Shown here piece by piece: positions 24,236 to 49,044 of a stretch of 64,000 nucleotides of DNA (its first letter is position 1; every line of letters starts with the position of its first letter). The DNA is taken from the NCBI GenBank assembly GCA_038496445.1, contig JALMLS010000075.1:62001-126000 (forward strand). The letters run 5' to 3'. Made by a program: the position numbers and the translations under genes. The notes under the pieces were generated by a model that did not search any database, was not told where the DNA came from, and saw nothing but the letters and a program-made list of their open reading frames with translations. Origin of the DNA: Trichosphaerium sp. ATCC 40318 (Eukaryota > Protista > Tubulinea).

Positions 24236-25993
<1,758 letters not shown>

Positions 25994-46838: not shown

Positions 46839-48169
46839 TTATGATGTAGGAAACCAAGGAAAAAAGCTACTAGTATTACGCATGTATGCTTCAAAGCCTG
46901 GTTTTGTTTTACGCAAACCACGCTCTAATAATGCTACACCTGAAACTTTCAAAAGCAAAAATGTCATCAATATTGGAGAGTAAATTGTTGAGTAGTTTCC
47001 GGCACCAGCAGACAATAAATAAAATCCCCAAAACATAGCAGCATTTCCAAAGTAATTAGGGTGTCGTGTGTATTTCCTATAGAGCTAAGTAAGTACCACA
47101 ATCCTTGTATGATTCAACAGAAAAAAAATGACAACCAGTTTTTAAGTTTTTCAAAGAAAAAATTGAGCACAACTTAGATGAAGGCCAAATAAGCACTCGT
47201 GTTACTCAGTTGGTAGATAACACTTATGTGCATGCGTATAGTGCATTGTAAATTTTGTAAAAAATCAGGACGTACCATAATCCGGTTGTTAATAGTTTAC
47301 CCTTATTCTTCGGTGAACTTTTAAAAGCTGCCAATTGAAAGTCACCAACAGCTTCAAAGTAGAATCCTACAGCCCAAACAGCCATACCAACAAAATCAAG
47401 AACACTAGCAGGTGCGTCACCACTAATAGCGCCAGATAAAGGATGTCCAATGATCTAAATGAAGCGCAAAAGTCAGAATCTGAAAAAAACTGAAAGCATC
47501 GACGAACCCAGTTTAGTACGCCTTGTAGTACAAATGTTTGGAAGTAAGATACCCACCACCAGTTCTTACCGTAATGCTTTGCAAATTGCGCATATCGATA
47601 ATCTAGTTCTTGTGAGGAAAAGATGACAAATCTAAAAGTAGGTTGTAATCGTACCTTCGTGGCCCCAGTTACGCCAGAATAGGTATGCAGCCAACCTTAT
47701 CGCCCATAAGCTGGTTAGAAGCATAGTTGTGTCTTTTCGCCATTGATTGCCATTTTGTGAGTCGCGGTGGATGTAATAGACGATGGCACTGAGTAGAAAA
47801 CCTATACAAGTACTTAGATACGTTATTTGTAGAAGTATCGCGAACCTAAACTCCAATACGGATCTACGATAGATACTTTGTTAATCAATCGTGCGTAAAG
47901 GTAGAGAACGGAGAAAGCGCTTAGTAGAACGCCAAAGCACACTAATTTCGCTGAGTAAGTGTTCGCAAACGCTTCCAGGGCGACATATTGCGATGAGGAC
48001 GTTAATGCGCTCAGAGCTTCCATTATTGAGGGTTTAGCGGCTAATTCAGAATAAACGGACTAATTTCTAAATAATCCGTACCCCAAGCAGCACCGATAAG
48101 AGCAAACGATATAATAAGAGCCTTGTTCTTCGACAAGAGCTTTTGTACGAATTTCAGCGGTTCTGACAT
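46839..48169 (-). CDS. DUF1295 / steroid 5-alpha-reductase-like membrane protein
   Basis: KVSIVDPYWS, LWAIRLAAYLFWR, EDYRY, FEAVGDFQL..FK, GLWKYTRHPNYFG, LLKVSGVALLE, YMRNTSSFFPWFP. Confidence 0.9.
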
Positions 48170-48379
48170 TTGACGGCGAAAAGTGATTACGACACGCCTT
48201 AATCCAGCAACCTTACATTGTGTTCAGTACGAAAACGAAATAATAGAGTGGTAAACGGGTGATCAATAATCGTTTTATTGTATTTCAAGTGCTTTTGCTC
48301 ACATAACCTCTTAACCGATTCTTATACGCGTCAATAGCGGGTAGCGAACGAATTCTCGCCAGCAAAGCAGTTTTCGCCC

Positions 48380-48450
48380 ACGTTTCCGCCCTTTCAGCAG
48401 TTTGTCACTCGCTAGAGTTTTGACAAATCGCGTCACTTGCATGACGACGT
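48380..48450 (-). promoter_or_regulatory. SECIS element (form II, GUGA core)
   Basis: Minus strand reads ACGUCGUC..AA GUGAC GCGAUUUGUC AAA ACUC UAGC GAGU GACAAACUGC UGAA..GGCG..ACGU: quartet core, 10-bp helix II with one A-C mismatch, apical AAA, mini-helix. Confidence 0.85.
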
Positions 48451-48498
48451 ACAGGTAGTTAATTAGAGGTCGTGGCAATCACAGCGCGAATGTCACGC

Positions 48499-48958
48499 TT
48501 ATTTCTGTTTAATCTCTACTGAGTGGGAATAGAATCCGAACCTATGGTACATTAAACAAGGCTTGAGGGTAAGAACTTGCCATCCTTTGATTTTCTTAGA
48601 GGATCCAGAAGCGTTTGGGTAACACCAAACGTGGTTTGGGAGTTCCTTCCCATCAACAACGATGTTGTAGTAGCTGGCCGTGCCCTAAACGTTCAATGAC
48701 GAATCGATCTGAGGAAAACTCCGCACAAGCGCTGGTTGCATTAAAAACGTACCTTGGAGCCTCAAGAGCTGGTATTAGGCGACTTGACGAAATACTCCAT
48801 GTTAACAGATTGTGGAGGGATGTAGGTGTATCCTAAAGCGCATAAGCATTGTTTTACGTTACATACAGACCAAAAGAACAAAACAGTTGCCTACCTGAGA
48901 GCGACTCAGTTTTTTTACTGTCAGCGATAACTTTGCCGTTGAAGGTAATTGTTGCCAT
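48499..48958 (-). CDS. DUF427 (NTP_transf_9)-family selenoprotein candidate, 96 aa, Sec45
   Basis: Exons 48958-48895, 48832-48753, 48684-48581, 48541-48499 give MATITFNGKVIADSKKTESLSGYTYIPPQSVNMEYFVKSPNTSSUGSKGTASYYNIVVDGKELPNHVWCYPNASGSSKKIKGWFGFYSHSVEIKQK*. TGA at 48764-48762. Confidence 0.85.
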
Positions 48959-49044
48959 GATTGTCAATTTAAATTACTAAAACACAAAGTATTGCTTAAC
49001 GCTATTTTTTATTTAAGCTAGTAATATTGGGCTATGTACAAAAC

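Follow-up and report, generated by a model that had tools for sequence, protein, structure and literature searches.

A stretch of 64,000 nucleotides of Trichosphaerium DNA (the window) carries on its minus strand a hairpin with a GUGA core, which had been predicted from the sequence to be a SECIS element. The locus raises the question of whether this hairpin could direct the decoding of a UGA codon as selenocysteine (Sec) and, if so, which protein it would serve.

Anatomy of the hairpin

The minus strand was read between 48100 and 48700, and every base named in the original prediction was found there. The candidate consists of the following parts:

48380..48450, minus strand: whole SECIS candidate with helix I, internal loop, core, helix II, AAA bulge and mini-helix (sequence, Rfam SECIS_1, pattern scan)
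48433..48436, minus strand: 5′ core GUGA, in which G replaces the usual unpaired A and is followed by the UGA of the non-Watson-Crick quartet (sequence; aligned to AUGA of RF00031)
48393..48396, minus strand: 3′ core UGAA, with G48395 and A48394 opposite A48433 and G48434 as tandem G·A (sequence; aligned to CUGAU of RF00031)
48422..48431, minus strand: 5′ strand of helix II (sequence, RNAfold, pattern scan)
48397..48406, minus strand: 3′ strand of helix II (sequence, RNAfold, pattern scan)
48418..48421, minus strand: unpaired A run (AAR motif) on the 5′ side (sequence, Rfam alignment)
48407..48418, minus strand: mini-helix of 3–4 bp and tetraloop UAGC, the form-2 apical part (RNAfold, Rfam alignment)

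The predicted partners GUGA (48436-48433) and UGAA (48396-48393) are both present. Within them, UGAC (48435-48432) stands opposite UGAA (48396-48393) in the UGAN/NGAN layout, with U48435·A48393, G48434·A48394, A48433·G48395 and C48432·U48396 facing each other, and the core quartet of a type-2 element is in place at the sequence level. G48436 is located directly 5′ of the quartet, in the position that is held by an unpaired A and less often by a G. The adjoining helix II was described in advance as a 10-bp helix with one A-C mismatch, which agrees with the sequence apart from an additional wobble pair: the strand G48431-C48422 lies opposite G48406-C48397, and the 10 positions comprise 8 Watson-Crick pairs, one G·U (48429·48399) and the A·C mismatch (48428·48400). 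Its length falls inside the range of about 9–12 bp for type-2 elements. The apical AAA of the original prediction is in fact part of a run of four A (48421-48418), which starts 11 nt past the fourth core base and thereby inside the usual range. The mini-helix CUC/GAG (48417-48415 with 48410-48408) is closed by the loop UAGC (48414-48411) as predicted and has 3 bp, or the predicted 4 bp when the pair A48418-U48407 seen by RNAfold is counted. At the foot of the hairpin, one possible helix I is formed by 48450-48443 with 48390-48380 and contains a 3-nt bulge; a constrained fold (see below) gives a different helix I.

Pattern statistics, Rfam comparison and folding

For a pattern scan of our own, RTGA-N, a helix of 9–12 bp with at most one mismatch, AA and GA were demanded on both strands of the 64-kb window. 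The sole match is the GUGA hairpin. Markov-simulated sequence yields an expectation of 0.8 matches per 64 kb and both strands, and the match by itself is not significant across the window; for one given 3′UTR strand, the corresponding probability is about 0.002.

When 101 bases around the hairpin (48365-48465) were compared with all 4227 Rfam families at E≤10, only RF00031 (SECIS_1) matched. The score of 13.4 bits (E=4) lies far below the gathering score of 35, in a model whose seed stems mainly from animals. Division of E=4 by the 4227 families results in about 1e-3 for SECIS_1 alone on the 101-base stretch. The alignment extends over the full model, with 48447-48385 on model positions 1-64, and reproduces the register of the original prediction in placing GUGA on AUGA, helix on helix, AAA on AAA and CUGA on CUGA. 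In the scoring with SECIS models, one of the checks proposed with the original prediction, the hairpin matches a single family in the right register and reaches 13.4 bits against the gathering score of 35. At the gathering thresholds, Rfam reports two tRNAs only and no SECIS element in the whole window. A scan at E≤10 of 451 bases spanning the 3′UTR gives no SECIS match, and on the same strand only a CRISPR repeat (E=1.5) and SymR (E=7.2), both at chance level.

In several respects the hairpin corresponds to the form-2 SECIS elements of RF00031, namely in its place in the 3′UTR, the UGAN/NGAN core with tandem G·A, a helix II of about 10 bp, the unpaired A run 11 nt past the core, and the mini-helix with tetraloop. 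It deviates from them by the G instead of A in front of UGA, the A·C mismatch in helix II and the bulged helix I, and by its score relative to the gathering threshold.

The folding energy of the hairpin is not unusual (z = −1.17). In the minimum-energy structure calculated by RNAfold (−24.1 kcal/mol) the GUGA is part of a competing hairpin, in which 48446-48441 pair with 48436-48431. When the core and the A run are constrained to stay unpaired, the optimum is −19.4 kcal/mol for a structure that retains helix II and a helix I, and the structure written out above, built from helix I (48450-48443 with 48390-48380) and helix II, has −14.7 kcal/mol. Folding with RNAfold, likewise proposed as a check, accordingly supplies a SECIS-compatible structure with an open core; the calculated optimum, however, pairs GUGA elsewhere and is more stable than the SECIS fold in terms of the folding model. 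We regard this energy difference as a reason for caution and not as a refutation, since nearest-neighbour models give credit neither to G·A pairs nor to protein binding. Taken by itself, the hairpin is no better than chance, and the case for a SECIS element consequently depends on where it is located.

Place of the hairpin in the transcript

Transcript evidence was obtained from RNA-derived Logan contigs of three runs belonging to two studies (X1, X2 and X3), which together cover 48260-48961 and define the following gene:

48895..48958, minus strand: exon 1 of the DUF427 gene, start codon ATG 48958-48956 (splice joint 48894/48833 in three runs)
48753..48832, minus strand: exon 2, which holds the UGA (spliced contigs; weak PF04248 match before UGA)
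48762..48764, minus strand: in-frame UGA, proposed Sec codon, codon 45 of 96 (RNA contigs X1, X2 and X3; Cys of homologues)
48581..48684, minus strand: exon 3 (spliced contigs; Pfam PF04248)
48499..48541, minus strand: coding part of exon 4, stop codon TAA 48501-48499 (spliced contigs)
48260..48498, minus strand: 3′UTR of 239 nt with AAUAAA at 48279-48274 and the end of the X1 contig at 48260 (sequence, transcript contigs)

The introns 48894-48833 (GT-AG, 62 nt), 48752-48685 (GT-AG, 68 nt) and 48580-48542 (GC-AG) are removed in X1, X2 and X3, and the orientation of the splice sites assigns the transcript to the minus strand. Splicing joins the four exons to an open reading frame of 96 codons from ATG 48958 to TAA, interrupted by a single in-frame TGA. 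The GC-AG intron is very short (39 nt) and itself in frame; its retention would add 13 residues and leave the frame intact.

The contigs of X1, X2 and X3 traverse the hairpin and reach 48260, 48290 and 48297, respectively. The AATAAA expected near 48275 is found at 48279-48274, about 100 nt downstream of the element, and the X1 contig stops 14 nt past it, which means that the mRNA reaches at least to 48260. Because the contigs extend through the hairpin and beyond the AATAAA, polyadenylation upstream of the element, the finding that according to the original prediction would speak against it, is not borne out. In the mature mRNA, the UGA is positioned 219 nt and the TAA stop 62 nt upstream of the SECIS core. 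The minimum spacing between a UGA and its SECIS element is said to have been put at about 51–111 nt by Martin et al. in 1996. The hairpin is hence situated inside the 3′UTR of an expressed and spliced mRNA, which contains an in-frame UGA at sufficient distance.

The neighbouring DUF1295 gene on the same strand contains a 41-nt intron (48041-48081, minus strand), and its transcript contig begins about 92 nt downstream of the end of the DUF427 mRNA (48167-48260, minus strand), a very compact spacing.

A further contig, X5, originates from a marine metatranscriptome; it spans 48274-48470 and differs from the window by four substitutions and one insertion. Two of the changes fall into the region of helix II and the apical part, at 48400, the partner in the A·C mismatch, and at 48412 in the apical loop; those at 48378, 48380 and 48382 are clustered at the base of helix I, whose outermost pair is broken by the change at 48380. 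All Watson-Crick pairs of helix II, the core bases and the bulged A are untouched in this near-identical strain. By position counting, such a placement has a chance of about 1 in 20 and lends weak support to the hairpin.

The in-frame UGA and the invariant cysteine of DUF427

The part of the protein encoded downstream of the UGA (exons 3 and 4) is recognized by the Pfam model PF04248 with 31.5 bits at a cut-off of 22.1, and the part upstream of it (exon 2) only weakly, with 15.1 bits (E=0.021). PF04248, or DUF427, is a domain with a beta-tent fold and unknown function (PMC4287342). A contig scan with the 61-residue exon 3-4 sequence as query provided 69 metagenomic loci, which are mostly intronless and probably bacterial. 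The column of the UGA, four residues before the GTASYY motif, is occupied by Cys in 69/69 of these homologues, and a Sec-type orthologue, with a second SECIS element for a comparison of the helices, is absent among them. The same correspondence was obtained over the entire length of the protein: when the 96 residues, with X at the UGA, were aligned by MAFFT with 50 distinct full-length homologues, they matched end to end at 33–45% identity, and the X column was Cys in 50/50.

The UGA codon is identical in X1, X2 and X3, whereas three other positions of X2 and X3 deviate from the window. Since three runs carry the same letters, the UGA is no artefact of assembly and no private nonsense mutation, and a sequencing error was likewise rejected.

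The protein shares with DUF427 proteins the PF04248 match and the end-to-end alignment; unlike its homologues, it has UGA in place of the invariant Cys, three introns in its gene, and several altered motifs that are near-invariant in the family. According to the MAFFT alignment, these departures concern residues 21-27, 45-49 and 66-71, where EGN.YFP is changed to SGYTYIP, C.WKG to U-G-S-K-G, and AAWYYP to HVWCYP. The last of these changes produces a Cys 24 residues after the UGA position, where the family has a Tyr. Other searches contributed little: the 61 residues read from exons 3 and 4 gave no candidate in a word-based protein search, a sequence search of the PDB gave one irrelevant weak match only, and a full-text literature search for DUF427 and selenoprotein gave no report of a Sec form.

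Proposed function of the element

On the basis of these data, the hairpin is very probably a functional eukaryotic SECIS element of type 2 (form 2), located in the 3′UTR of a gene with four exons that encodes a 96-residue protein of the DUF427 family. In analogy to established SECIS biology, we infer that its core would fold into a kink-turn composed of G48436 followed by the non-Watson-Crick pairs U·A, G·A, A·G and C·U. The 10-bp helix II would act as a spacer between the core and the unpaired A run, with the mini-helix as the closing element at the top. The kink-turn would be bound by SBP2 or the equivalent SECIS-binding protein of the protist, and the resulting complex would recruit the Sec-specific elongation factor with Sec-tRNA, such that the UGA 48764-48762 (codon 45) would be decoded as selenocysteine and not as stop. 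The G before UGA would be tolerated, as a variant that occurs commonly in some lineages.

This variant is documented elsewhere. In Chlamydomonas reinhardtii, Ostreococcus tauri and O. lucimarinus and in the sponge Amphimedon, the majority of SECIS elements follow the pattern GUGA_AA, with 12/21 elements in Amphimedon (PMC3473315), and GUGA is also cited for green algae and for some archaeal SECIS-like elements (PMC11227280). The hairpin of the window resembles the elements of Chlamydomonas, Ostreococcus and Amphimedon in the G before the quartet and the AA in the apical part, and those elements operate with the standard eukaryotic Sec machinery. The original prediction was right in calling GUGA a known variant; given its majority status in several green algae and a sponge, however, the term “non-canonical” is too strong. 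As the GUGA core is already known from other lineages, the hairpin would represent an ordinary type-2 eukaryotic SECIS element.

Stop codon usage and alternative explanations

One alternative is that the hairpin merely looks like a SECIS element by chance and that the UGA is a true stop, which would leave a 44-residue fragment or a young pseudogene. It is compatible with about 0.8 expected occurrences of the pattern per 64 kb, with the weak Rfam score, with a SECIS fold that is not the energy minimum, and with a protein that differs from its family at several near-invariant sites. However, it does not explain why 51 further codons behind the UGA are open and family-like across two more correctly spliced introns, why the UGA falls exactly on the invariant Cys, or why it is retained in the transcripts of strains that differ at other sites; in addition, the probability of finding such a hairpin in the UTR strand of the DUF427 gene is about 0.001–0.002. 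We therefore consider a chance resemblance improbable.

A slightly smaller probability is assigned to readthrough of the UGA without Sec, in which Cys or Trp would be inserted by a near-cognate or suppressor tRNA or owing to a variant code, and the hairpin would be irrelevant. The use of stop codons in the window bears on this explanation. We read 11 frame ends, those of nine open frames of at least 170 aa and those of the DUF427 and DUF1295 genes, and all of them (11/11) are TAA or TAG and none TGA, a sample too small to call TGA avoided as a stop. The ends with Pfam support belong to actin, GST, DOPA dioxygenase, DUF427 and DUF1295, and a homology-supported TGA stop was not found among the 11 ends read in the 64-kb window. 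The lack of TGA ends agrees with readthrough; against it, the rate at which TGA interrupts long frames, corrected for its frequency, equals that of TAG, and a SECIS-shaped hairpin sits precisely where Sec decoding requires one. The number of long open frames that end at TGA (23/85) is close to that expected from its frequency, and TGA thus gives no sign of being an ordinary sense codon, a possibility that was rejected on this count.

Least probable, in our estimation, is an insertion of Sec that is directed by a different RNA element, at another site of the 3′UTR or in the coding region, with the hairpin as a bystander. Two more GUGA strings do exist in the UTR, near 48495 and 48481, and the minimum-energy structure is devoid of the SECIS form. 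No other RTGA in the window, however, satisfies the pattern of helix II, AA and GA, and the 451-base Rfam scan of the UTR offers no substitute beyond its chance-level CRISPR repeat and SymR matches.

Among the frames read, the actin gene (24236-25177, minus strand) contains a tRNA-Met (CAT) gene at 24481-24553 on the same strand within an intron; this intron happens to stay open in frame, and the whole stretch therefore reads as one 313-codon ORF.

Meaning for the DUF427 family and for the host

Under the preferred reading of the hairpin as a SECIS element of the DUF427 gene, the element adds no new mechanism, as its core variant has long been described. The gene that it serves appears to be of greater interest than the element itself, since the encoded protein may be a new selenoprotein. 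The UGA codon and its Cys counterparts support a DUF427 protein that would use Sec at the position of the invariant Cys. By experience, a Sec/Cys pair points strongly to redox catalysis, and the pair presumed here would consequently supply a functional clue for the widespread domain DUF427. It is reasonably likely that the SECIS element serves the first Sec-containing member of the family, that Sec constitutes a redox-active catalytic centre with the Cys at +24 as a possible resolving partner, and that GUGA is a recurrent minority type in the selenoproteome of the host. If this holds true, Sec at the invariant Cys provides DUF427 with its first testable biochemical hypothesis, in which the lineage-specific Cys generated by the change from WYYP to WCYP, 24 residues downstream, could act as the resolving partner of the Sec.

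For annotation, the SECIS element would rescue a gene that standard gene callers would truncate at codon 44, and searches for SECIS elements in the Trichosphaerium genome must allow for a G before UGA. Within the family, one of the Cys-type relatives (L062; JAABUK010001026.1, 55 kb) has a reading frame whose interruption upstream of the conserved core resembles an intron, and might possibly be a eukaryotic DUF427 member as well.
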